From Magallana gigas (Eukaryota): a stretch of DNA of 64,000 nucleotides. The stretch is from positions 29,698,001-29,762,000 of the forward strand of contig NC_088855.1 in the NCBI RefSeq assembly GCF_963853765.1, written 5' to 3'. The notes beneath the pieces are model-generated. The model did not search any database, was not told the DNA's origin, and saw only the letters and a list, made by a program, of their open reading frames with translations. Every line of letters starts with the position of its first letter. Within the stretch, counting starts at the first letter, position 1. A program made the position numbers and the translations under genes. This document shows positions 35,944 to 63,600 of this stretch, in pieces.

Positions 35944-38900
35944 TGGTAAATTTAAAGCCATTGATTCTGGGCACAATTTAAGGTATCTTTTTAATTGATG
36001 CTAAAACCGGATTAGTAGTTTTAATTTTGAACACTGAACACATTATCTTTATATAAATATATATATTTTTACCCTCCCCGTTCTAGTTTCTGTGATTTTT
36101 CAGGAGAATAACTGTCAAAATCAATTTCTATTGCCAACGTCATCATTGGTAGTACAACTTTTACTATGTTTGCATTTGAATTTATTACACTCTATTATAC
36201 TTATTTCTATTTAGAGTTTCATATTTACCCCCTTGTGATCCAGTGCCTGTGAAAGTCCCTAAAGGTAGTACAATAACCAATAAAATCAAACTTCATCTTT
36301 CCAAATCATTTCGTTTGATATCTAATGAATTCTTCTTTCGATGTTAACAATCATGATAGACTGTATATACTAATATCAAATTAATGTATTTTTATATTTA
36401 ACCTCCCCTGTCACAGTTTCTAATAAATAAATTCAATTGAATTTAATTTTACAATTTAAAAAAATCCTCTGATCCTATATCACATGGAACTTTTTGAAAC
36501 ATAGGTCTATATTTTTTTAACTTGTGCCATCAGTACCCCCTCCTGTAAATAATTCATTTGTTTACAGTTCTGTAGGGTTTTTATTACCTGGACCTCCAAT
36601 ACCCCCTTCTGTAAATGATTTATTTCAGTTGTTTAAACATAAAATATATACTGAGTAATATTTAATTAAGACATTGTAAAACTAAGGACGATAATATCAT
36701 AAGTATTTATGATTGCAGTCTAAAAAATTGATAAAAAATTGTTTACAAACCTAATGAAGTGTTCATCATTGGTAGTACAACTTTTACTATGTTTGCATTT
36801 GAATTTATTATACTATATTATACTTATTTTTATTTAAGGGTTTCATATTTACCCCCTTGTGATCCAGTGCCTGTGAAAGTCCCTAAAGGTAGTACAATAA
36901 CCAATAAAATCAAACTTCATCTTTCCAAATCATTTCGTTTGATATCTAATGAATTCTCTCGATGTTGATAATCATTATAGACTGATTATACTAGTATCAA
37001 ATTAATGTATTTTTATATTTAACCTCCCCTGTCACAGTTTCTAATAAATACATTCAATGGAATTTAATTTTACAATTTAGAAAAATCCTCTGATCCTATA
37101 TCACATGGAACTTTTTGATATAAAGGTCTATATTTTTTTACCTGTACCTCCAGTACCCTCTCCTGTAAATAATTCATTTGTTTAAACGTCTAGAATATAT
37201 CATTTAATTTTCACAATGTAAGACTAGGGAATGATATATAGTTCTGTAGTTTTTTTTACCTGTACCTCCAATACCCCCTCCTGTAAATGATTTGTTTCAG
37301 TTGTTTAAACATATAGTATAAACTGAGTAATATTTGATTAAGACAGTGTAAAACTAAGGATTAAAATATCATAAGTATTTATGATTGCAGTCTAAAAACT
37401 TGATTTAAAATGTTGACAAAACTAAAGAAGAGTGTTAAATAACCTTCACTGCAATGCTATTTGGGGAGCTTGGATTTAAGCTATGCAAATGATAAGTTTT
37501 CAAAAAATGCCAACTTAAAGAAAAATAAAATAAAATATTAAAAACACTTCCAAGCAAGAAAAAAGTATAGAATACCTGGCACATAGACAGTTTCTCCTAA
37601 AATAATCAATTTTGAAAACAATATATACTGCAATGCATATCAGTAACAATTGGTTTATTCTTCTTATCATGAAACATAGATGTCTAGTATATATTAAAGC
37701 TTAAAACAGAAAACAATATTCGGCTAAAAGACTTATTCTTGAAGTTTGAATTCTAAAAATTTAAGTACTATTCCCTGCAATTAGTTATCGCATTTGATGC
37801 ACTTCCAATTTTTTCAAAATGTAATAGAAAAAATATTTTTAAAATATAAGAAGTGGTTCTGTTCACCGAATGAAATATTGATATCTTTTAAGTTTGCTTA
37901 AAAGTTTGCTTAAAAATTAAAAATCACTGTTTGGTTTTAATATCTCTTTTGAGAAATTTGGTTATATTACACCACATACTCCCATGAAAGCATTTTTTTT
38001 TCACAGAGGCAAGCTTTTAATTTTTTTTATCAAAATACCTGACGTACCAGTACCTCCTGATCCTAAAAAACACCATTCAGCTTTGATTACTGAATTATGA
38101 TTTTAAAGCACGCGGGTGAGAAAGTAATTTGGTTTTTATGCCCATTTAATTTTGTATCTACAAGCACAAATTATAATTAAACAACATGATACCTGGTTTG
38201 TTTCTTAAAAGACTAATTGCTATGGGACTTATATTTTTATTATATATATAAAGTTATATTCTAGAAATGCGTAATCAATATTTCCGAAAAGCAGATTTAA
38301 AAATTTTCGAAATCCTAATACCTGAAATTCCCGATCCTCCCGTACCTATGATTGTTCCGCCTGAAATCATTTTTAATAACTTTTTACTCTTTTTTTCTTT
38401 GCTTTTTTAATAGACCGCGGCTCTTTTAGATATTGAATCAAATTTGCTTATAAGCCAAATAAATGTATTATCTTTTGTTAATACTTTACAAAATGATAAC
38501 GAAACACTTTAAATCGAAGAGGCAGTGTAACTTGATGTCAATATCTTTAATTTGAACTTAAGTAATATGCCACCACAGGTCCCCAATGAAAGCAAGTGGT
38601 TTTAGTACATATCAAAGCTTTTCCTTCTTAGTTAAAATACCTGAAGTTCCAGTACCTGTTCCTGTTCCTAAAAAAATTAGTTTTAATCGTTGAATTGCTA
38701 TTTTTTGTTTGCGCATTTGATATATTCATTTAGCGTTTTTATCAATTTTATACACATCTTAAAATTATCATAAAACAGTATGGTGCCTATCCTACATCGA
38801 AAGATTCTTATCTTATTGCAATCGGACTAAACTTTTTTTTATAAAATGTTTAAAGCTACATTCACTAATGGGTAAAAAAAAAAGCAGATCTAAAAATTTT

Positions 38901-41900
38901 CAAAATCCTAATACTTGGAGTTCCCGATCCTCCCGTACCTATGTAAGTTCCGCCTAAAATCATTTTTAATAACGTTTTACTCTTTTTTTTTACTTTGCTT
39001 TTTTTTTTATATAGACCGTGGCTCTTTTAGATATTGAATCAAATTTGCTTATAAGCCAAATAAATGTATTTTCTTTTGTTAATACTTAACGTAATGGTAA
39101 CGAGACACTTTAAAACGAAGAGACAGTGTTATTTAATGTCAATATCTTTAATTTGAATTTAAGTAATATGCAACCACAGGTCCCCAATGATAGCAAGTGG
39201 TTTTAGTACATATCAAAGCTTTTCCTTCTTAGTTAAAATACCTGAAGTTCCAGTACCTGTTCCTGTTCCTACAAAAATTAGTTTTTATCGTTGAATTGCT
39301 ATTTTTTATTTGCGCATTTGATTTATTCATTTAGCGTTTTTATCAATTTTATACACATCTTAAAATTATCATAAAACAGTATGGTGCTTATCCAACATCT
39401 AAAGATTCTTATCTTATTGCAATAGGACTTAACCTTTTTTTTATAAAATGTTTAAAGCTACATTCACTAATGGGTAAAAAAAAAGCGGATCTAAAAATTT
39501 TCAAAATCCTAATACCTGGAATTCCCGATCCTCCCGTACCTATGTAAGTTCCGCCTGAAATTATTTTTGGCCGTCAATGTTTTCATGTACAGAGACGGAA
39601 ATACAAACAAGGTTTTACTTTGAATTTTGACTCTCATAATATCATTACTAAAATGATTTCAAACACCTAAAGCATTCAAGACGTTTCCAAGCATTTCAGC
39701 CTTCAGAATTTACTAAGCAGGCAATGGTGTTTTATTTTAAACTAGAATGCTCTTTGGAAACAAAATTTGCAAGACTATAGCAAAAGTATCTAAGAAAATG
39801 TACGTATATTTAGAGATACACAATAGTGTACATATTTGTAGAATGACAGAAATCAAGTAAGCAAATGCTTTTCTGTATAATGTATTTATATTCCTTTCAG
39901 TCTTTTATCAATTTATACATTACACGTCACAAAGCATTTCGTTATTTGCTTGGGGTTTCTTTTAAATAATTGATTTCAGATGAGCAGATACGCAGGAGCA
40001 GTAAAAATTGGGAAGTGTTAATGACTGGAGACTGTGATAGTGCTAGAACTGTAAAAATATTATTTAATTTTAATTCAAACACAGATTTCATTCTTGTCAA
40101 CTTTTTGAGTAACTACAGATAATGAGTTTCAAAAATTGCGATAGGATAAAATCATGGTATGCCGTTACAAAAGCCATCAAAAATGTGTTCCCAGCTTGAA
40201 ACCCCGAAAGCGGCCATTCATTAGTATCAAACATATTATATATCTTTAAAATTCTTAATACAATCAAAATTCAGTAAAAGAATCGGTTTTAGGTAAAGTT
40301 TCTTATTGTGGTTTATACACTGCTTATTGAATTATTACACTTAAGCAGTTCATAATTACCTGGTCCAAGTAAGGGGACTGAAATTCACAGTGCATTGTTC
40401 AATGTATGCAATATGTTTACCATTTGGCGAGCATTTGGGGGCTGTGTAACATCTCATGTAAATTATCTCGCTTCATGATTTTTCAAAATCCTATTACCTG
40501 AAATTCCCGATCCTCCCGTACCTATGTAAGTTCCGTCTGAAATTATTTTTGGCCTTCAATGTTTTTATGTACAGAGACGCAAATACAAGCAAGGTTTTAC
40601 TTTGCTTTTTGAATTTCATAATATCGTTACTAAAATTATTTCAAACACCTAAAGCATTCAAGACGTTTCCAAGCATTTCAGCCTCATTGCATTTACTAAG
40701 CAGGCAATGGTGTTTTTATTTCAAATCAGAATGCTCTTTGGAAACAAAATTTGCAAGACTATAGCAGGAGTATCTAAGGAAAACTACATATATGTAGAGA
40801 TACACAATACAGTGTACATATTTATAGAATGACAAAACTTTATACAGAAATGCTTTTCTGTATAGTGTATTTATATTTTTTTTCAGCATTTTATCAATTT
40901 ATACATTACACGTCACAGAGCATTTTGTTATTTGCTTGGGTTTTCCTTTAAATAATTGATTTTAGATGAGCAGATACGCAGGAGCAGTAAAAATTGGGAA
41001 GTGTTAATGACTGGAGACTGTGATAGTGCTAGAACTATAAAAATATTATTTAATTTTAAATCAAACACAGATTTTATTCTTGTCAATTTTTTGAGTACCT
41101 ACAGTTTTAAAAATTGCGATAGGATAAAATCATGGTATGCCGTTACAAAAGCCATCAAAAATGTGTTCCCAGCTTGAAACCCCGAAAGCGGCCATTCATT
41201 AGTATCAAACATATTATATATCTTTAAAATTCTTAATACAATCAAAATTCAGTAAAAGAATCGGTTTTAGGTAAAGTTTCGTATTGTGGTTTATACACTG
41301 CTTATTGAATTATTACACTTAAGCAGTTCATAATTACCTGGTCCAAGTACGGGGACTGAAATTCACAGTGCATTGTTCAATGTATGCAACATGTTTTACA
41401 TTTGGCGAGCATTTGGAAGCTGCGTAACACCTCATGTAAATTATCTCGCTTCAAATGATTTCCCAGAATCGTATGGTTAAGTGGTACAAATTTATTTAAT
41501 CGTTGATCTTTAATGCCATGACAACACCAAAACCAACAACCAATTTTCTACATCTACATTTTTCTCTTGTACATTTATTTGAAGTACTCACCCATTCCTG
41601 TTCCACCTAAAATCAAAAGACCAAACCGTGTGAATAAAAACAGAAGATGCTGGCAAGTAGAAGGGTCAACTACGAAGTTGTATTTTTGACAACAGACATG
41701 ATGAAAATGAATAGCGGTGACGAACATAGAAAGCACAACATGTTTGTCTCGCTAAATGATACCAGTACCTGAGCACATATTGCAGTGTTTTGGACAGTTT
41801 TCCTGCGTAAAAGCAGTGTATGAGGGATCGCTGCAAAAGCTTGTTCCATATTGAGCGCAATTTACTTTATCAGTGCAAGACGAAGTAGACCCTGGGCCAA

Positions 41901-44900
41901 GCAAAGAAATGATCAAAACAGTTTGGTTACATACAGATAAGCAGTGAGTAAACATGTATATTGATGAGCAACGTGGCAGTTTGGAAGATGAAAAGTTATA
42001 CAGATTAATGCGTAGGTGCATGTGCATACAAATGAACAGACATAGAGATACAACAAAATCTAACAAATCAAACTTTTTCCTTTCATTGAATAAGGATTGT
42101 CTCATGCTTTGCAATTGATGATTCTGACGAAAAAAAACATGAATACATTTTTATTGCAAAACTTAAACATACGACCCATACCTGTTGAACACAAATTGCA
42201 ATATTTTGGACATTGCTCCTTTGCAAAAGCAGCATAAGCAGAGTTTGTACAAATTGCCGTTCCAAATGAAGCACAATTAGATTTGTCCGTGCAGGAGCCT
42301 GTTAAGAATGTAATGCAAGCAAAGCTAACAAAACGATAACATTAGGCAATGGTTCTCCTGTAAACAGAAAAAGCAAGCATTCCTTTTCTTTGTTAAATTG
42401 AGATTTGCAGGGTGCCATTTGTGAAAATTGAGCCTTTTGTGTTTAACAGAATCAATCTTTTAAAATAAAAATACACACAATTTATTTATTGAATTGATCA
42501 ACTAATTAACAAATTGTAGCAAAGCAACCCATTGAAATTATCAAAACATTTAAAAACAAGTTTTCAAATTTAAGCAATACTCCATCCAAGCAACATTGAA
42601 TAATACTAGTAGACTCTTAAAGTACTAACCATTTTATTTTATTTTATTTTATTTTAAATGTGGAAAAAGCAACGTCATAGATATACGATTAAAAAAATAA
42701 TAATGAGGCGTTTCACATTAATTATTGCTGCAGTCTTTGCTTATCTGAAAACATATTTTTTTCTTTAATCTTTTTCCAAATCAGAATTGAAATAAAGTCA
42801 AAATCAGATCACTGCAGCAAAATATATTTTTTTTTTAGATTTCAAATATTCATTCTTCATATGAATTTTGAAATCTTTATACTTGCTGAAAATTTGAACC
42901 GAAAATATTAAACCCACCGGTCATTGTTCCAGTTCCACCTATGAAATGTTTAAGTGTATATATTTAGATATTTGTTGTTTGTTTCACAAATTGAATTATT
43001 ACGTGTACTGTTGAATTATTTTGAGTTCTCATGTTGCGCTATTACATAAAAAAGTTGAATATTTACCAGTCATAGTTCCAGTTCCACCTGTGAAATGTTT
43101 AAAAAAGTATAAAAATATTTGTCTTTAACTTCTAAAAGAAAATAAATCAATTGTTCTGTTTACAGTTATAATAGTAGCTAATTATTATATAAATTCTTTT
43201 ATAACGATTTAAAAAAAAAAAGCTCAAAACGTACCAGTCAGTGTTCCAGTTCCTTTGGAGATAAAAGAATAGAAATTTTTTTTTAACCGTATTAGATATT
43301 AGTAAATTTAAAAAGATCATTTACAGTCGATAGAACTTAAAAATTTGAAAACTCACCAGTCATGGTTCCAGTTCCTCCTATGGAGATAAAAACAATTGAA
43401 GTTATTCATTGTTTGTGAGTTGAAAAAATATTGCTATGTTTTCAGTTGCAATTTACACTATTTTTATATGTTCAAATGCCATAATGTCTCATAAAAAGGA
43501 AGAAACTCACCAGGCATGATTCCACCTTTAAGATTTGGAAAAAAAAACTATGTCGTTATTTGTTGTTTGTTAATTAATTAATTTGAAAAGTCGCATAATT
43601 GAACTTTAAAATAACTGTAAAAAAAATAATGATAATTGAAAATCTTTTTACCTGTGGATCCACCTAGAAATACAACAAAACGTCGTGCCTTAGTTTGATG
43701 TAACAGAACCTCTAAAATCATACTGCAAAGACTTTGCGACTGTGTATAAATTTAATGACGTAATAAGGATGATATTGTATTCAAATCTGTTTCAGCATTA
43801 TATAATGTACTTTTCGGCATGCATACAAATTTCTCTAAACCAAATGTACTCACATTTGTTACAATAGTTAGCACAATTTTTGGTGACCCATTGGTCATAT
43901 TGAGGATCAGAACAGACTGTTTTGCCGTAGGCTGCGCAGTTTTGGACGGCATCGCTACAGGTTACCACTGAAATTCAGAATAGTTTACAAAATAAAAACG
44001 TTAACATTCATTAGAAAAACATTGACTTAAAATCCAGAGCGTGTTCGTCTAAGCAACATGTTTTATGGAATATATGAACTGTAATTAAAATAAATGTTTT
44101 CCTTACTTGTTCCGGTTCCAGCGCTTCCAGGGGTTCCGCCAGTACCTAAAGAAATAGTAATTTTAATTGATTAAACCCTTTAAAGATACGTACTGTAGAT
44201 TGGCAAATAATCACGATGATTTTAATTTCGCTATGTTTGTCATTTAATAATTTCCCGCGAAATTAAACCGTTTCAACGCTTATATTCTGATAAATTGATT
44301 TTCAAGCAGCGTGAAAAAAGCCCCATCGCGATTGGTACTTAATTAGAAATCGTGAAATTTTAACACCGTGGAATTAAAACGACTTACAGTATTTGGTCTC
44401 TATAATTTTAAGAGCTCTGTCAATTGTAGAATTTGATGGGTATCAACGTCAGACAGGATTTTCTTTTAGCAACTTAATAACTTTTTTTAAGTTTTGTAAA
44501 GCCTTTAACTGACAAAGTCGCTACTTATAAAATATAATGATAGTAAAGTTATTTTAATAGAACATCGCAATTTTCAGTAATTGAGGGTAAAAGGGTGAAA
44601 TATTTCTTTTTCTTTTTCAAACAGAAGTAATTGCAAAATTCTCTTCGCCAAGCTCTAAGTCTAAGCTTTATTTACTCTTTTATTTTGCGTTTGAGATGTC
44701 ATATAATACACCTTTACTTCTATAAATAATGTATTTTAAAATGAAATAATGTAAAACATGAAATAATGATCAAAACTCATCATTACATTAAATGAAAATT
44801 CTGTATAGACATTTTAATGATCAGATACCAAAGTGAAGTGAGAATCCACCGTCACCGCCTCCACCGCTTCCGAGATGAGTCGAACCTGAAATATTTTGAA

Positions 44901-47900
44901 AATTATTTGTCTTGGTTATGATTGATGTTTGTGCAAGCAAAAGAACTATCAAGTTTTTTTGGTTTTGTTTTGTAAGTTTTTTTTTGGTGAGGTTAATGAT
45001 ATGGCATCTTTATTTCGAAGACATCATATCCATCTAAAACCTAAAATATTGATCCCATCAATTGACATGATCATTTTCGTACAGTAAATGCAGAGCCATC
45101 TTCTGAACAATCAACTCAATGACAAGCAATTTAAGTAAGCAAATAGTTGCCTGCTAAACATAAGAGTTACTTATTCATAAATCTTTGCGTTTGAGCAGAA
45201 TTTACTTTTTTTCGATTTTAGCTGAATATTTTCAAAGAAATTAATTTTCATTTGCTATTCAACGTAAATTTAAAAAAAGTTTTAGTAAGTTCCAATCATA
45301 ATAAATCTTTTTCTGCTTTAGAAATGCTTGTTACTTTATGGTATGAAAATTCCTACTTCTGGGCAGAAAATATTACTTTGGAAGTATTTTTTACAGTCGT
45401 ATGATGCATTTAAACTATTTGGTTCAAGAAGGTCAATCATAGATCAATATTAAAGCAAGGCTAATAGCAGCACTCCTTAATTTTCAAAGCGATAGCTCGG
45501 AGACCCATTAACCACAGCGCTAGACGATCCTGATTAGTGTTTGTGAAGTTTTATTTATTTGGTTTACTAAAAATATGGGTGTTTTTTTTTTAATTTTGAA
45601 ATTAAATTATTAAAAAAAATAATAAAAAATTACTGAAATGAACAATAAAAATATCATTGCTATGTCTCTTTTTTTAATCATTATATAATTCTTTATCTTG
45701 ATAAATGTTTTTAGGGATATTTTTCAATAATTATATTATTGAAATGAAAAACATATTTTCTTTTATTATCCAAATATATATATATATTGAGTTTTTGTAT
45801 GGATGTGGAGGTTTAAGTCCCTATTTTCATATCTAATGTGCTGAATTATTTTTTTTAATTATCATGTCCGGCTCTCAACATCGCTAAGTACATCTTAAAT
45901 GACCAGTATTTACTACCATCCGTAAAGACGCCCAATTAACGATACTGATTATTAATTAACATTGAATAGATCAAAAGACGTTATTTATTTAAAGAATTGC
46001 TTTTCTTCATGTTTCTTATTCTGACTATTCCAATAAATACATATTCTGTCGTAAAAAAAAAAGTTAATGTGAAAGCATATATATTTCTAGGTTTGGTGTT
46101 TTGTACCCTAGTTTTTTCTCTATTTTCATTAAGATAATTTGATTTGAACGCTAACCTTTTACCTGAAAATTTTAATTTAATTTTAATATAAAAAAGCGAA
46201 AAAGGGATATTATTGGTATTGGCAAAGTTCATAGATGTGTTAATGCAAATGCCCTGAAGGAAAACTCACCACCCCCCGAAACAATACCGCCAGATCCTGA
46301 AGATGAAGTGTTAAGAAATTTATACATTGTTTTTAAGTTGAAAAACGTGTGTTTACACTTTTTACTGTTTTTTATCCTTTATATTCCTTTTGTATTCCTT
46401 TTGTAAACAATTTCTACAACAACAGTTTTTTTATTATGGCAATTAAAAAAGCGAAAAAGGGATATTCTTGGTATTGGCAAAGTTTATAGATGGGTTAATG
46501 CAAATGCTCCGAAGGAAAACTCACCACCCCCCGAAACAACACCGCCAGATCCTGAAGATGAAGTGTTAAGAATTTTATGCATTGTTTTTAAGTTGATAAG
46601 TGTGTTTAATCTTTTTTCTGTTTTTTATCCTTTATATTCCATTTGTATTCCTTTTGTAAACAATTTCTACAACAACAGTTTTTTTATTATGGCAATTAAA
46701 AAAGCGAAAAAGGGATATTCTTGGTATTGGCAAAGTTTATAGATGGGTTAATGCAAATGCTCTGAATGAAAACTCACCACCCCCCGAAACAACACCGCCA
46801 GATCCTGAAGATGAAGTGTTAAGAATATTATGCATTGTTTTTAAGTTGATAAGTGTGTTTACACTTTTTACTGTTTTTTATCCTTTAAATTCCTTTTGTA
46901 TTCCTTTTGGAAACAGTTTCTACAACGACAGTTTTTGTTATTATGGCAATTAAATATAATAGGTATCATGGGTATAAAAACATAAGGATGTATTAAATAT
47001 GAACAGATTTAATCAAGCATTTGCAATTCTTAATTATTAAAGCGATTGCTTTAGATAAACTATTAACCGCCGCCAGTCATTCCTGTCAATATTTGTAAAG
47101 ATTAATTGATTTCTGTTCTTAATTTCATCCCATCATTAATTCTTTCGAACACTCGATATTCTAGAAATAATTTTAAGATAAAGTGTTTCCAAATGCTTCT
47201 ACTATAAAATGGTTTTTTTATGAAAAATATCTTGATCAATGTTTTTATACAAATTCAGGTACAAATATTAAGAAACATGGAATTCTATTCCTTGTAATCA
47301 AATTTCGTGTTAGTTATTCATTAGAACTAGTACGATTTGTATGAATGCAAAATTGCTAAAAAACATGTAAAACAGATGTTCAAATTAGGCTCTATTACTT
47401 TAAAGGATATAAGCTTCGCTTTATATCATTTGTAAAAGCTAAAGCTTGAAAAATTTAACACTTACCGCCTCCTGAGATCACACCGCCAGATGACCCTAGT
47501 TATTGTTTTATATAGAGTTTAATACATGTTCTTAGGATAAATACGAATTTGTTTTTATTTTTTCTCTATGATTAATCATTTATCAATATTGACATAAAAA
47601 GTACTTTGTTACATTTTAACTTCATTATCGTGATATTTTTAGTTATTTTAAATTCTTAAATACCTTGAATTTATTCTTTTAATTTATCTTTATGTGCATG
47701 CATATTACTTATCAATAAATAGTTTTGACATCTATTATTTTTTAATCACCTTTTAATACCTTTTGGAAAGCTATGTAATTGTAAAGAAAGTAATGGTAAT
47801 TTATATCGATTCCTTCTGAAGTATATTTTACACATATTTACATGTCAGTAATTTTGTTTTCCGTAAAACATTATGTGCATGAAATTATGTATTAAAGTTC

Positions 47901-50900
47901 ATCCCATAAATGTAAATTATATTTTGAAAAAGCAATGCTTCATGGTGATTTTCGAAGCAAATCATTTTACCCATTACTAACTTTGCTCAATACGTTCATA
48001 TTAAATGATTTAAAACTTGCGTTTTTGTATAAGCTATATTTCAGTTGTGAATGCTTAGCCAAGTAATACTTCCCTTTACACATTACAGATAGTATTTCGA
48101 TGCATTCTAACCAGTCCAACCCTTTCCTTCGTATCGTTTTTCAAATTATTATTCCTAAGATGACAAAGCCTACCTCCACATTGGTTACAGTACTGTGCAC
48201 AATTTTGTTTGACCCACTGTGTATACTGGGGGTCGGTACAGACAGCCTGGCCGTAGTTTGCGCAGTTATTGATGGTGTCATGGCAAGTTCCTCCTGTGAA
48301 TAAACAATGATAAATTTGAAAATTTATTTCCTTATTTTATATCGCCTCGATGATTAAAGAAAAATACTTTATTCAACGGTAATTTGTCTTGGCATTTAGA
48401 GAAATTTTACAAAACAGGTTCTTGATTTCTCTTACCGCTCATAAAAGACCCCGAGTGTCCAGAACCACTACCCATTGTCAAAACAGGTGCTGTAAAGGAA
48501 TATAAGATTTTGATATATCGATTATATTAAAGCTATTGATTCCTAAAGCCGACAAAACACATTTTTTCTCATCTAAATAGTAATATAATTATTTATTGTA
48601 TACATTGCAAAGCCTTTAATAACCTTACCAGACATCGGTCTACAAAGTATTTTGCTCAAAAGAAACATATTTCACTTTTAAGCATCGCTGGTTATATAAA
48701 ACCAAGCACAAGCTATTTTTTAAATAAACAATACTTACTAACTCCCCCTGACACCATACCACCAGATCCTAAATATTGATAAGTAAAACTTAAAGTGCCC
48801 CATTACTGTTCTATTGCAAAATGTTCTGCACTCTAAACAATGTCGTACTTAGCTTGATTTTGACTTTACAACATACTTTCCAAAGTTCGTTTTTTTTTTC
48901 AAAGTATCGTCAATGTATTGTAAAGTTTAAGTGTCAATTAATCTCAAATGAAGAATTGGCTTGCATTGTTTACAACGATACAAGCACATGCATTCATGAT
49001 TTTTTTCAAATGCTTTTGTAACCGTTTTTGTAAAGCCACTGTAAATAACGTATAAGGACGTCAATAGATTTCACAACAAGACACCATCATCCACGCCGTA
49101 TTTGCTACAATGTATCGGAAACAGAGGGAGAAAAATGTTGTCTATATTTGGTGAAAACTTGTATGAAAAAGATATTTTTAGTAAGGTATAACAGCCCCCT
49201 TTAAAAAGAAGAAAGATGATAATAAGCATCTAAATAAAATAATAAAAATGAATATCAATATTTCACTGTCATTTCTAGATCTTTGGCGCTCTGGAAGAAT
49301 TTCGTGATTTAGTACTCTATAAAAATTGGCCACGGTGCTCTATTCTACGTTTTTTTTCATAAAGTAATTAATTACTCTTTTTGTAATCGATGGGGTATGC
49401 TTGTCTCCCCCCCCCCCCCGCAAAACTCAGGTAAGGACAAACATTACACACCCTCACTACTCAGGTTAACCACAAGGCATCTACCTACAGGAACACTATC
49501 CCATTCAATTATCAAAGTAAATATGTCTATTTTTTCATAAACTTACATGTATTAGTATCTGATTATTAATTGGATTTGCATGCTATTTTTTCAATTAATT
49601 GCATCATGTTTTAATTATACAAGTTCAAGAATTTTTCCTTTTGTGCATGATAAACTAATACCTGAGGCTGAAAGTCTTGTGTACGAGTCACTCAATGTTT
49701 TAAAAAAGTGTATTAATATACTTATAATATTTAGATACATTTCTGTATTAGTTTCAACAAGGATATACGTTAAGCTGGCGTGTATTATTATTCGCAAGTC
49801 CAGTCCTTTTATTCCTTGCACTAGAGTCAAAATGCATTGCATAAATAAATGGTAATGTTCCCTAATTTTTTAATTTTAAAAACATGTAAAACAGATGTTC
49901 AAATTAGGCTCTATTACTTTAAAGGCTATAAGCTTCGCTTTATATCATTTGTAAAAGCTAATGCTTGAAAATTAACACTTACCGCCTCCTGAGATCATAC
50001 CGCCAGATGACCCTAGTTATTGTTTTATATAGAGTTTAATACATGTTCTTAGGATAAATACGAATTTGTTTTTCTTTTTTTTTTCTTTGATTAATCATTT
50101 ATCAATATTGAAATAAAAAGTACTTTATTACATTTTATCTTCATTATCGTTATAATGAAGATAAAATGGCATTGCGTAAATAAACGGTAATGTTCCCTTA
50201 TTTTTTAATACAGTTAGAAAAAGTCTATGATATATCTGTTTCAAAATATTGTGTAAATTTTGAAGCATGTAATTTATTCATAAATACAAACCATAAAAAG
50301 ACGTAAATTTATGACGCAGCAAAAATGTATTTCAAGTTTTGAATTACTTAAGTCATCGCGATGCTAACATATTTTTGTGAATATTCAAATGACACGCCAC
50401 GGCCATTGTTAAAGAATGATGTCAGAATGAATGATCTGTATTACGTCACCTGCTACAAAAAGGTATATACAGCTGTATTGCGATAGTGATTAGATACTGA
50501 GCCAGAAACAGAAATTCAAGATTATTGTTCCTGCGAAAAAAATTACATATAAGCATAGAGTGTTTTAGCCTTCCCACAGATATATTAAATTCAGAGAGGA
50601 AAATTATACCGATTTTGTAAATCAAATCGTGGTCACACTATGATATATATATTTCTTGGTGAAGTCGATATACCCACGACTCGACCGAACACAACAACTT
50701 TATTTATTTTACACACCGACTCCTATGTAGTTTTTAACTTTTCAATAAGTAACCCTGTTTCTTGATGCTACATGTTTTTTATTGTTATTTCGTTAAACTC
50801 ATTTTTATTAATGATTCGTCAGATTTCTTATTGTGTCAAACTGAGCAGGGAAATGTACATAATTTAATGTAATGACTTATTTGAAATATAAATCTAACCA

Positions 50901-53035
50901 TATCTGAATCAAATGCAAAAATTTTGTTGGCGTATTATATGCTTGTGCATCGATCACATCTACATTTAGTAGCTATTCAAAAGGGAATCTAAATTGTCAA
51001 TATGTCAATACTATGTCTTATCACGTGATAACATTCTACAAGTGACTAACCTGATGTTCCGGTAATGACGCCACCGCCGCTGCTACCTGAAGGTTGGAAG
51101 TTGCATTTAGGGACTTGGCAACACTGATTGTTAGGATCCTGTTGCATGAAACAACCATCAGGCAGAGTGTCGTAATGAGGGCAGCTGTATTAAAGAGTAG
51201 AAAACACTCTTGATTAATCAACCGTTGCATGATGTAACTGATAACAACGTTTTCATTATCTTCTTGTTCTGAGATAATTTCCATCCTTTTTTATAGGGAG
51301 AACAACTGTATTTCTGGTCCTATGAATTTTCTTGTAAAGTTGGTAATCAAACAATTTTTTGCAATATGGCCGTGGCATTTTTTTAGGGTGAGGCTTAAAG
51401 GTATTTGTATATAATTGAGTTATCATTCAGAACAGGTTCATGATCTGTGTTCTACGTACACTTCGGTACAGCTGTAGCGTCCGGCTGTGCCATCTTTGCA
51501 AACACAGTTGTATTTACAAGGAACTGTCCACGTCTGTCCCTGCTGATAAACTTTTCCTTCGTACAAACATCCTCCACCTTTAACAGAAAATGCATCTTTC
51601 ATATTCTATGACACCAGTTACATGGGTGACTAATACCACTTGCAGTAAAATTGATACTTTTGATTAATGCGACGTATTTCACATTAATCATTTGTATAAA
51701 AAGACATTTCATGCAGAAATCTGCCTAGAATAATAACACCATCAATTTTGTACAAATGTTTTTTCTCTCATTCTTTGTTAAGAATTAAACATATAAAACA
51801 TTGTTTTGGGTTTATACTTTTGATGGATAATTTTGTCCCTATATTTCTTTTATAAATTTTGTTTAAGTATAGTTATGTTTACTCGAAGAAACATTCATAC
51901 ACTCAATTGAATAGTCGTAGACAATCGCACCAAAGAACATAAACAAGTTTGTATGAACTCTGGTGTTATATAACTTCGTTATCAAGCTATATTTGGTGGT
52001 CTGGGATTGACTTGGGCTAGTGTGATTCAAGGTGAGATTTTGTTTTTGTGGGTCGCGACAGGTTATCTTTCCAAAAGGGCCGTGTGTCATGAAGTTTTCA
52101 TGAACGTATCAGTGTGTACCAAACCAAACCCCCACGCATTCTATTACTTTTTGGTAACTTGAATTCTTTTATTGAAGATTTGTTTTAATTACAAATTATA
52201 GCCGTTTCAGAGAAAAGTTTGATACAACAAAGACACCGTATACAAAATACTGAATTTCAAACCACTAGTTGTTGATTTTTAAAGACTTTTTCAAAGATTT
52301 TTAAAGGTTTTTTTTTTAAATAATTTCTTTTCGGTTAAGTCAAGTATATTTATACAAACAGCTTAATATTATTTCATACTTATTGTTTATTTTTAAAAAA
52401 AAAAATAACATAACAATAAAAGGTGCTAGTTACAATGTAAATTGCCCAGCAACTAACTTTATCTGCGAAAAACATAACCTATTTTAGATATCTTAATTAC
52501 ATTCACGTTTGATGTCTCTAACAGTAAAACATTATTTATTTTTTTTTTTACAAAATAAAGTTTATCTGCTCATTTTTCTATCTCAGATGAATGAATATAT
52601 AAATTTATATTAATGATTATATTTTTTCGAAACCCCATTGAAAACAGAACGCAGCTATGGGAGCTCGCTTCATACCCTGGTCTAACGTGAACAGAAAATA
52701 AATAATTGATATCGCATTAAAAATAGGTGAAATCTTACTAGAAACCCAATACATTTTTTCCAAACTGATAGTTTTTTCAATCGTGCTTAAAGTCTTCTAT
52801 GAAATTTCTACATAAAAACAACTAAAACTATAGTATCTGAAAGAACGTTTGAATTATTATATGATTTTTGTCTTATTTTTTTATTCTAGCATTTACTCAA
52901 ATTCAAACAAATATATGAAATTGAATTTTTACCTGCTTGTCGTTTTACGATGTGCCTAGTTCTCCGCACTCCTTTGATCTTCTCGGAGGCGACCAGAGCA
53001 ATGCACACGATAACTAATACGAAAATTTTATTCAT
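33161..53035 (-). CDS. Secreted micro-exon-rich protein: signal/propeptide, VWC-like domain, six ShKT domains separated by Gly/Thr/Ser/Met-rich linkers, C-terminal VWC-like domain (about 832 aa if all 47 exons are used)
   Basis: Signal exon 53035-52933. VWC-like 51577-51460 + 51184-51051. ShKT exons 48293-48174, 43967-43854, 42298-42182, 41891-41769, 34685-34551, 34114-33773. VWC-like 33546-33435 + 33287-33161 (TAA). Micro-exons: 50012-49983, 48768-48739, 48489-48436, 47495-47466, 47082-47068, 46804-46778, 46551-46525, 46296-46270, 44885-44829, 44145-44107, 43663-43652, 43525-43511, 43377-43357, 43252-43235, 43087-43067, 42938-42918, 41606-41592, 41355-41338, 40536-40498, 40377-40360, 39554-39516, 39268-39242, 38953-38915, 38667-38641, 38360-38322, 38062-38039, 37596-37576, 37280-37260, 37162-37142, 36882-36853, 36608-36588, 36542-36522, 36258-36229, 35439-35419, 35029-35009, 34898-34881. 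Each is flanked by AG/GT, 3n long and phase 1-1. Confidence 0.88.
33773..34114 (-). CDS. Exon encoding ShKT domain 6 plus contiguous GTMTG repeats
   Basis: CADAINNCANYGQGVCSDPTYTDWVSKNCQAYCHKC has the six-Cys ShKT spacing ending CxxxCxxC; followed by SSGTMTGGTMTGTGTGG... Confidence 0.92.
35901..35939. repeat. (GA)n microsatellite
   Basis: Pure run. Confidence 0.95.
36141..37421. repeat. Tandem duplication of an intron+micro-exon block (offset about 623 bp)
   Basis: catcattggtagtacaac starts at 36141 and 36764. Both copies carry the GTFTGTGSQG exon, a 17-nt exon-like unit and two 21-nt exons. Confidence 0.9.
38285..39570. repeat. Tandem duplication with a period of about 600 bp (GGTxIGTGGSGxx and GTGTGTGTS exons)
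   Basis: aaaagcagat.taaaaatttt..aaatcctaatac recurs at about 38287, 38880 and 39481. Confidence 0.9.
39555..41460. repeat. Tandem duplication with a period of about 980 bp (VPxLGP and xGTYIGTGGSGIx exons)
   Basis: About 39555-40480 aligns by eye with about 40537-41460 at high identity. Confidence 0.9.
44191..44391. mobile_element. Probable TACTGTA...TACAGTA MITE in an intron
   Basis: Short inverted termini and CG-rich internal motifs; short TIR only. Confidence 0.5.
46180..46945. repeat. Three tandem units of about 254 bp, each containing a 27-nt GSGG(I/V)VSGG micro-exon
   Basis: aaaactcaccaccccccgaaacaa.accgccagatcctgaagatgaagtgttaag recurs near 46261, 46516 and 46769. Confidence 0.92.
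47358..47630. repeat. Dispersed duplication of about 270 bp (second copy about 49877-50150) carrying a 30-nt GSSGGxISGG micro-exon
   Basis: taaaaacatgtaaaacagatgttcaaattaggc...cttaccgcctcctgagatca.accgccagatgaccctag is nearly identical at both sites. Confidence 0.88.
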
Positions 53036-60619: not shown

Positions 60620-63600
60620 TTACTGCTCAACATAACCGGGTGGGTACTGAACTTGGATGTTTGGTGGACAGTTTGGTGTCTGACAACATTTTCCCGGACC
60701 TGGTGGATTCAGACTACAGGAAGGTGGGAGGTTCCATTTTAAACATCTGTCAAAAGTCAATAACTTTATTGATAAATGCATTAATAGTATTCATATGTCA
60801 CAGGGTATTCCAGGAAATGTCTTGTGATTTATAAACGTCTAAATCCCTTTACAATATCTTTCATCCAAAGCATATTTGTTGCTTCTGAAATTAAGTATTG
60901 GAAAACTAATAACATTGAGAACATTAAATTCATATGTACTATTTCATTGTGATTGGAATTTTTTTAAATTTTATTTTTGACAAAAAGTAGTAATTAAAGT
61001 AATGTAAAATCATACCTATAGGTCGGTTTTTAATTATATATATTGCAATTCTTTATGATGACCCCTTTTTAAAGATATTGCCAAACTTACTTATAGTAAC
61101 AAAAAACCGTGAATTTGAATAATTCTCCTACAATGTAAACTTACAATCCTGTGCAAGTGTATTTTCCAGTGGCGGCGTCGTGACACGTACAGCTGTATGT
61201 ACAGCCATCCTTCCAAGTCTCTCCTTGTTGGTAAACGTGGTCCTTGTATACACAGCCTAAACACACGGTAATTCCACTTAGTCTCATGTGTTGTATATAA
61301 TACGTACTATTCATGTACATTTATGCCAACATACTTATCATTGCTGTAAATCTGTTTTCTTGAAAATAGAAAAAAATGTTACATTGTTGAAACCAACTTT
61401 TTTTCGCGACGACTTTATTTCACAATAAATTGGTTCGCGGCGATAAATTTTGTGAAAGAGCTTCATCAACCCTTATGGCTATTTACAACCGTATAGCATG
61501 AACTGATTCGCGGCGAAAAATATTAGCGACGACAAGCTAAAGGTTTTCAATAAAATCGCGAAAATTTCTCTCACGCAAAGAAAAGTAGGTTTACATTATT
61601 TAATGACGTACAGATATTACTTCAAAATATGTGTTGTGTCTTTCATTTTTTATTTATCTTTCATGGCATCTTTCATTTTTTTTATATCAACCTGTAGATG
61701 ATCCAGTAAAGGCACCATGATTTCCATTGCTGGTGCCAGGGCATTTATGACAGTAAGCCTGACAGTTCTTCAAGACCCAGTCAGTATATGTTGGATCGGA
61801 GCAGACACCTTTTCCGTAGTTGACACAGTTGTTAATTGCATCAGCACACGTTCCTAAAATAATGTAAAGAACTATATATGATAAGAGTTAAATTTGGCCC
61901 CCATCATTCGCCATTTTTCAAGTGTTTCGGGTACAATAAAATGTTAACTAATTTTTTAGAAGAGTTGTTATAGAATATATTTTTCATCTATTTATTTGAT
62001 TTATTTGCACTCACTTGCAGTATATGACGTCAGAAGTGACGCCATTTCTATAATTCAATCAAAATCAGCCAAAAATTGACATTTTTCTTATCTATTTACG
62101 AATGGGAAATATAGAGCGCATGCTTGAACAAGGAAAATTTTTTTGTCACTTATTAGTCTTAGCTAGATACATCTCTGATTAAAATATTTTATTGTTTCAA
62201 GAATGCGCTCTATGTTTCCGGAAGAAAAAACTGCTAGAAAACAAGCTGTTTTACGCTAAAAATGCAAAAATGGCGGGAAAAGGTTGTCTTTACAATCTTA
62301 TATTTCTAAATTGTGGGCACTTGAAACAAAATGAATATTATGTAAACACGTCACATACATATCTGTACTAGGAAAACAAAGAATGATAGTTAAATGATGA
62401 TGTTCATTTTAGGGGGCCATTTTAGGACCTTATTATATATAGTCCTGGCCAGATTCAAAGAGTTACCGGTGGATAATTTTACAGTGTTATTGCACTGTTT
62501 AGAGGTTGTTTTATCTCTGGTGTTGTAATTAAAAGGAATATCAATGGAATTGGTAAGGATACAATGCATTATTGATGTAAATTGTTATTAATAATTTACA
62601 ATTTGCAACGAGCTTTGATTACACCACAAATGATTCTGGGTCCTGTTTCTTCAAACTTGACTTTTGACGTTTTAACTTTAGTGAATCATTTTAGTCGTTT
62701 TAACTTTCAAGCTTAAATTATGTCTATGTCGCTCCAAGTAAACATCTCACCAATACTATTTTTTATCAAAGGTTTTACTTATATCTTTTAAAGAACATTT
62801 TGGCGTGTAAAACGTTACTTTATTCGATGATCTTGCGATGTATAATCAATATCTTGGGATGTAAGTTCTATTTCTTGTAATGTATATTCTACAATCTTGT
62901 AATGTTTGTTCGATATCTTGTGATGTATATTTTTTATCTCGTGATGTATATTCTGTACCTTGTAATATCTATTTAAAATCTTGTATTGTATGTTTAAAAT
63001 TTTGTAATGTATGTTCGATAATATTGTGATGTAATTTCAATATATTGTAATGTGTATGGTATATATGTAATTTTCATTTATATATTTCAATCTCTTATGT
63101 TCATGTGTATTTTATATCTTAAAACATACATCACAAGAAATTTAACTTACATCATAAGATTTTGAATATACGTTACAGGAATGTTAAATATAACAATGTT
63201 TTACATGCCATAAAAAACAAAACATTGATAAGGTATAGACGTTATTCTGCTGTTTAAACAAAAATTAAAAATACAGTATTGATTTTGATTTGTAAAAAAT
63301 GCATACTTTTCTATGAGAATGATGAAACCTATTTTTCATTCATAAAGTAGAGCTGTCTCTTGTAGTACATATAGATGTTAAAACATCAACGTATCATAGC
63401 ATAGGGATATAAATTTGCATAAAGATATAAACTTTGCAATTACTGTGACAGTAAAATCGTGAAAATTTTAGAGTTACTCTTAAATTTGGCAAGCAAAAAA
63501 AAATAACACAGGTATATATCACAAAAGCTGTTCACCCATATTTGACAGAAAAATAAATTCAAATAAAGAATGATTTTCTTACCTGCTTGTCTACGATTCA

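Follow-up and report, generated by a model that had tools for sequence, protein, structure and literature searches.

Exon-cassette duplication in the micro-exon linker array of an oyster ShKT/VWC protein gene

We have analysed a gene of the Pacific oyster Magallana (Crassostrea) gigas in which the part encoding the protein's linkers, an array of micro-exons, has very probably been built by repeated local duplication of cassettes of exons together with their introns, and remodelled by exchange, conversion and exon loss. The gene occupies positions 33164–53035, minus strand, of the window studied (64,000 nucleotides (nt) of contig NC_088855.1, assembly GCF_963853765.1; gap-free, with no N, and AT-rich, with a GC content of approximately 0.3), as located by tblastn of XP_011453404.1 onto the window, matches to ShK (PF01549), six ShK cysteine patterns and the source names; all positions below are those of the window. 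NCBI has already annotated it as 'putative per-hexamer repeat protein 5', some of its isoforms being named 'PE-PGRS-like' or 'loricrin-like', and with at least 50 annotated isoforms it is one of the richest in isoforms among the oyster's annotated genes; its expression is very high. The literature searched yielded no paper on it.

The product is predicted to be a secreted ShKT/VWC protein. From the N-terminus it comprises a hydrophobic leader (judged by eye to be a putative signal peptide), a VWC-like domain, linkers rich in Gly, Thr and Ser with up to six ShKT domains between them, and a C-terminal VWC-like domain. Two exons score 23 and 22 bits with PF01549, above the Pfam cut-off of 20.9, and the six-cysteine pattern typical of ShKT occurs six times. 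The ShKT and VWC domains are encoded by exons of ordinary size and the linkers by about 35 micro-exons of 12–54 nt, all with AG/GT borders, a length divisible by three and introns in phase 1, so that the reading frame is kept with any subset of them.

Duplicated cassettes and their splicing

Five repeat blocks, designated A to E, were recovered by Tandem Repeats Finder, a repeat search and blastn self-comparison; they are the five proposed by a first-pass annotation of the same DNA, with small shifts in coordinates. The E-values in the self-comparison ranged from 1e-108 to 0, chance similarity therefore being excluded, and the pairwise identity of the units, a comparison that the annotation had proposed as a check, was 91.9–96.4% across the blocks. 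In every block there are one to three micro-exons, bordered by AG/GT, in phase 1 and of lengths divisible by three. Blocks A, B, C and D are adjacent direct repeats containing at least one complete exon each, and E is a dispersed pair; splice sites and frame are retained in all copies except one decayed exon in A.

Block A (period 623; 93.2% identity over 616 aligned bases plus one 54-nt indel) contains two 21-nt exons and one 30-nt exon. Its upstream unit A2 (36763–37433) carries A2a (37280–37260), A2b (37162–37142) and A2c (36882–36853); the downstream unit A1 (36140–36762) carries A1a (36608–36588, 21 nt), A1c (36258–36229, 30 nt) and the decayed copy A1b (36542–36522). Block B, with a period of approximately 600 and about 2.26 copies at 91.9% identity, combines a 27-nt with a 39-nt exon, which lie at 38667–38641 and 38360–38322 in unit B1 (38213–38811) and at 39268–39242 and 38953–38915 in unit B2 (38812–39412). 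A partial third copy, B3' (39413–39568), is an older 156-nt repeat that includes the 39-nt exon of the first C unit and overlaps the start of that unit. In B2 the final base of the 39-nt exon is A, giving Arg as the next codon, and the Roslin isoforms show ...GTP followed by R. The two copies of block C (period 982, 94.4% identity) pair an 18-nt with a 39-nt exon, at 40377–40360 and 39554–39516 in C1 (39498–40479) and at 41355–41338 and 40536–40498 in C2 (40480–41474). Four copies of the 39-nt exon are thus present, all on the minus strand, and they are diverged, as the first reading of the sequence had it: their 71-nt cores are 89–96% identical and the copies differ at 2–6 sites. Array D (46189–46954) consists of 3.0 copies of a 253-nt unit at 94.5–95.7% identity, with one 27-nt exon per unit (46296–46270, 46551–46525 and 46804–46778). 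Block E is a 277-nt pair, 96.4% identical and 2519 nt apart, formed by the probable source copy E1 (47359–47635; 30-nt exon 47495–47466) and E2 (49878–50154; 30-nt exon 50012–49983).

Beneath these, the blastn self-comparison revealed older layers in which the alignment is limited to an exon and 30–60 nt of flank, with 70–79% identity. They comprise B0 (37931–38070), the remnant of an older B-type unit with a 24-nt exon (38062–38039) and 70% identity to 38532–38675 at an offset of 601; the two 21-nt exons inside A; a pair of 21-nt exons at 35029 and 35439; and a weak match at 43217–43406 between two 21-nt exons located there.

The copied exons are spliced. Contigs of two DNA-type runs (X1 and X6) and two RNA runs (X16 and X20) were placed on 36000–41999, and the RNA joints fall at the predicted exon borders, with GT..AG ends on the minus strand, in A2 (37161>37259 and 36881>37141), at the B0 exon (37595>38038), in B1 (38359>38640) and along the 39-nt exons (38952>39515 and 39553>40497). 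At a further joint, 39557>40498, 15 letters of the 18-nt exon stand between the two sides. In C2, RNA joints lead to 41338, and a loose end, CATTCCTGT, at 41356 connects to the exon 41606–41592. The RNA word depth was approximately 1,100–8,500 at the joints and reached about 43,600 in exon bins, compared with about 70–300 in introns. The exon order 39 > 18 > 39 was seen in RNA contigs, and the two C units are therefore in cis. Usage of both copies in mRNA was observed through RNA joints and gene models for A to C and through gene models for D and E, which, together with their presence in the models of three assemblies, bears out the proposal that whole cassettes of intron and exon were duplicated. 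RNA joints that seemed to skip between paralogous 39-nt exons were discounted, given the few sites at which those copies differ. Both RNA runs also contained a contig of approximately 350 nt in which intron 36000–36228 is followed by exon sequence to an alternative acceptor at 36246 and then leads elsewhere; it suggests partly spliced RNA or an 18-nt version of exon A1c over 36000–36245.

Variation among assemblies, age and decay

Other assemblies were compared through their protein models, by a search with a ShKT-plus-linker exon followed by a word search with the public protein found; the window exons were compared with these proteins individually, as peptides. Three NCBI annotation releases of the gene were recovered, each with up to 50 isoforms: oyster_v9 (XP_0114534xx and XP_0199301xx), the Roslin assembly (XP_0343364xx) and the newest Magallana gigas release (XP_0659352xx and XP_065933921.1), whose peptides match every window exon tested. 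All 50 isoforms checked carry both A copies, in the order a, b, c, a', c', and the fullest v9 and Roslin models have the 39-nt exon four times, the 27-nt and 18-nt exons twice each and the E exon in both copies. The same complement, with A twice, is found in XP_011453404.1, in XP_034336416.1 and in XP_0659352xx/XP_065933921.1. As the copy numbers of A, B, C and E agree across the three assemblies, these blocks are not recent polymorphisms; judged from these models, they are common to three individuals and older than the present polymorphism. Smaller differences were seen within the copies: the 18-nt exon pair reads VPVLGP/VPLLGP in the window and in v9 and VPVLGP twice in Roslin, and the 39-nt exon of B2 in v9 differs from that in the other two assemblies.

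Array D departs from this pattern. XP_065933921.1 contains three consecutive D exons (residues 207–233; VV, VV and IV, with one junction glycine each), compared with two in all 21 of the v9 isoforms (VV, IV) and in all 17 of the Roslin isoforms (VV, VV). Three copies against two, the latter in 38 isoforms of two other assemblies, makes D a candidate exon-number polymorphism. The variation in exon number among individuals that had been expected for the array as a whole is thus narrowed to D, and there by protein models; A to C are equal in all three assemblies.

The newest NCBI annotation appears to divide the locus into two genes at 43652–43663. Its 5' model (331 amino acids) reads into the intron past a 12-nt exon, ending ...GSTGKKIFNYHY..., and its 3' models (approximately 360–431 amino acids) start with MTGGTGTMTGG; the two older releases have a single gene of approximately 600–680 amino acids there. 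The apparent split may be of use to annotators. Three 'type 2' ShKT exons (CxDKxNC...CPKxCNxC; 42293–42189, 41877–41773 and 34680–34576) occur in isoforms of the newest release, whereas all the v9 and Roslin isoforms read skip them; entire ShKT domains therefore also act as cassettes. The 39-nt exon 44145–44107 encodes TGGTPGSAGTGT in the window and in v9; in the Roslin models TGGSGGTGGTGP stands in its place, either a strongly diverged allele or the use of another exon.

The copies diverge by 4–9% (Kimura two-parameter distance 0.04–0.09; identity 92–96%), which is two to four times the difference between the window and the foreign contigs at the locus (1–3%). In the orthologues of Crassostrea virginica, Ostrea edulis and Saccostrea, each read as a single isoform, the domain scaffold is kept, whereas the repeated modules of the linkers differ and are specific to them; in C. 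virginica the isoform contains one 18-type and one 39-type module. On this comparison the duplications appear specific to the C. gigas lineage, postdating its split from C. virginica. They nonetheless predate the current variation, and the term 'recent', which the first-pass annotation applied to them, therefore holds on the evolutionary scale only: they are younger than the split from C. virginica, yet A, B, C and E have equal copy numbers in three assemblies, and the copies differ by more than the foreign contigs do from the window.

Between copies, the exons differ at 20 of 318 sites (6.3%), 17 of these differences being non-synonymous or at junctions, and the introns differ by 6–7%. This comparison of exon and intron differences between copies gave no sign of purifying selection on the duplicated linker exons, which fits flexible spacers. 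One copied exon has died: in A1b a 54-nt deletion has shortened the upstream intron to 45 nt, the donor reads GTTAAA, and none of the 50 gene models checked includes the exon.

Origin of the copies and alternative explanations

The blocks do not share a single origin. The first-pass annotation ascribed them all to unequal crossover, and for B a clear signature of this process was found. The 156-nt ends of the B units, each a 39-nt exon with its flanks, are 84.3% identical between B1 and B2, 85.5% between B1 and B3' and 95.5% between B2 and B3', and the spacer of approximately 440 nt is 94.5% identical between B1 and B2 (Fisher p = 2e-4 for the difference between ends and spacer). Such a step in identity would follow from a crossover between two older, misaligned 156-nt repeats, with one new 600-nt unit as its product. 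At the junctions of A, C and D, exact microhomology is limited to 0–4 nt, with an imperfect match of about 11 nt in C, and end repeats of the B type are lacking; a non-homologous or microhomology-mediated event is thus suggested for the first duplication. The annotation's inference therefore fits B; E is not in tandem at all. The longest identical runs, 118 nt in A (permutation p of approximately 0.004) and 172 nt in C (p of approximately 0.001), are unlikely under uniform divergence and, with the mosaic of copy-specific residues, fit later gene conversion or exchange. E2 is flanked by 46-nt direct repeats (49829–49874 and 50164–50209, 89% identical; 49829–50209 with the flanks) and has at its end a perfect 17-nt inverted repeat (50131–50147/50152–50168) forming a fold-back, and no counterpart of its exon was found before the first ShKT domain in the one C. 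virginica isoform. These features point to E2 being a copy of E1 inserted upstream, and we infer the direction from E1 to E2 from them.

The history we propose starts from a linker array of symmetric phase-1 micro-exons in which cassettes of 253–982 bp, each with one to three micro-exons and the surrounding introns, were repeatedly copied. A new copy, frame-neutral and with its own splice sites, would be spliced in at once, lengthening the linker by 6–24 residues, and would constitute one more skippable cassette. The first duplications (A, C and the first D event) may have been non-homologous or microhomology-mediated; the origin of B would be an unequal crossover that paired two 156-nt repeats of older date, and the third D copy would have arisen, with the difference of two versus three, by unequal exchange within the 253-nt array. 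Gene conversion would later have patched the copies, and a copy of E1 would have been placed 2.5 kb upstream, its insertion duplicating a 46-nt target and leaving a small fold-back. If the copies are near-neutral and some die, as A1b did, the array would turn over by birth and death and not by growth alone.

Another possible explanation, which we consider unlikely, is that the duplications are old and their similarity is upheld by continuing gene conversion, in which case the array would not be growing now and similarity would be no clock. Identity is indeed uneven along A and C, as the 118- and 172-nt runs show, and copy-specific residues are shuffled among assemblies in the 18-nt exon pair and the 39-nt exon of B2. 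However, the introns are as similar as the exons across hundreds of bases; pervasive conversion would erase the sharp step in B between old (84–85%) and young (94–95%) sequence; and the C. virginica isoform, with its one 18-type and one 39-type module, has its own different repeats. A much more improbable origin is a mobile element or satellite carrying exon-like sequence, that is, an exonised transposable element in place of duplicated exons of the gene itself. Such an origin could explain E, whose two copies are dispersed and beside which a direct repeat resembles a target-site duplication, yet at 46 nt this duplication greatly exceeds those that known transposons make at their targets, and the unit is not bounded by terminal inverted repeats. 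In addition, each of the units A to E, when searched against the 564-Mb genome, matched only its own locus, and none is therefore a dispersed transposable element.

A further rival is the one that the first-pass annotation had itself named as refuting its reading, namely two haplotypes of a heterozygous oyster wrongly set in tandem. Oysters are highly heterozygous, a copy divergence of 4–8% is not far beyond the strongest allelic divergence, and one X1 contig joins 36215 to 36840, missing exactly one A unit. That joint, skipping 624 nt, was considered as a one-copy A allele and rejected: the contig begins exactly on the border of the repeat, agrees with either copy for 118 letters and has a roughly doubled depth of 25.1, so it is best read as two A copies collapsed in the graph. 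Against an artefact of this kind, three independent assemblies model both copies within one protein, the RNA contigs have the order 39 > 18 > 39, and an X20 contig covering 36697–36869 bridges the A1/A2 junction. As supporting evidence only, the depth of copy-specific X1 contigs is full (C1 14.5 and C2 12.6, against 13.2–13.7 in the single-copy flanks) and that of the 98%-identical part of C is raised (20.9 in X1; 32.9 versus 19–20 in X6), which is the opposite of the half depth of mis-assembled haplotypes. No sign of mis-assembly was found in contig depth, RNA order or the models of three assemblies, and we regard it as hardly credible.

Several points nevertheless weigh against the account of repeated cassette duplication. 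Contig depths are no proper measure of copy number, and neither the B1/B2 nor the C1/C2 genomic junction is spanned directly by any contig shown, the evidence for cis arrangement there coming from RNA and gene models. The 39-nt exons are so nearly identical that some of the RNA 'skipping' joints are possibly alleles assigned to the wrong copy. The D difference comes from gene models of other assemblies, one of which is based on short reads; a collapse of the 253-nt repeat in the older assemblies is the alternative to a true difference. Finally, the mechanisms are read from junction sequences long after the events, and mutation or conversion may have blurred the breakpoints.

Three other irregularities were noted in the DNA runs. 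Loose ends at 37848 and 39127, considered as structural variants, were rejected as spurious partial placements; both map to one site on another chromosome (G000:C2:29459371-29459678) without blastn similarity to the window. In both X1 and X6 a contig runs along A1 as far as 36740, where it passes into 42 letters without a match in the window; it may represent another haplotype or a chance placement.

Neighbouring genes and comparison with known systems

Just 3' of the host gene, on the opposite strand, lies a tyrosinase gene (28008–30756, plus strand; PF00264, E = 5e-17), which may hint at a common secretory or matrix context. A compact paralogue, with one ShKT exon and the two C-terminal VWC exons and 75–85% protein identity, is located at 60623–61866 (minus strand); a micro-exon array was not detected in it by tblastn. 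The Rfam search of the window gave no matches.

The process is classical tandem exon duplication, of which this already annotated gene is a new example. Classic cases are the arrays of 54-bp exons in collagen, the PEVK region of titin and the exon blocks of nebulin. As in these, an exon with its flanking intron is copied head to tail, symmetric exons keep the frame, the repeats then serve for unequal exchange and changes in copy number, and a repetitive, flexible protein segment results. Unlike those of collagen, titin and nebulin, the duplicated oyster exons are much smaller (15–39 nt), their introns are in phase 1 and the array lies between ShKT domains. It is not collagen-like, since GGTYIGTGGSGIS, GTGTGTGTS and VPVLGP lack Gly-X-Y periodicity, and most of the exon lengths (15, 18, 21, 24, 27, 30 and 39 nt) cannot be divided by 9. 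What the locus offers is several age layers of exon-cassette duplication, legible in one 20-kb gene, which show how a modular secreted protein changes length; among them are an unequal-crossover signature, a non-tandem exon insertion with target duplication and a dead exon copy.

Secreted and shell-matrix low-complexity proteins of bivalves also evolve by repeat expansion, their repeats usually lying within one exon and changing by slippage. The oyster gene resembles them in the lineage-specific modules of its C. virginica, Ostrea and Saccostrea orthologues, its high expression and its tyrosinase neighbour, but differs in that each module is its own exon or exons, so that expansion copies introns too.

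The micro-exon genes (MEGs) of schistosomes have secreted products, much of their coding sequence in symmetric micro-exons of 6–81 nt with longer introns between them, and many skipping isoforms, and the papers on them emphasise gene duplication (bioRxiv 10.1101/2023.06.21.545858; PMC4350168). The oyster gene likewise combines symmetric micro-exons, a predicted secreted product and many cassette isoforms. Unlike MEGs, however, it also has ShKT and VWC exons of normal size, and the object duplicated is an exon cassette within one gene. The likeness is architectural: no sequence relationship is expected, membership is not claimed, and the relatives found are all bivalve proteins. We tentatively suggest, while considering it rather doubtful, that the locus could be a mollusc counterpart of schistosome MEGs, in which each oyster would come to have a repertoire of its own of this very highly expressed protein, through continuing cassette duplication, unequal exchange and conversion together with unrestricted skipping of cassettes, and in which D would segregate with two and three copies. 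If D does so segregate, it would provide a simple polymerase chain reaction (PCR) marker and a handle on the importance of linker length; this candidate polymorphism and the MEG-like behaviour are the parts that deserve follow-up.

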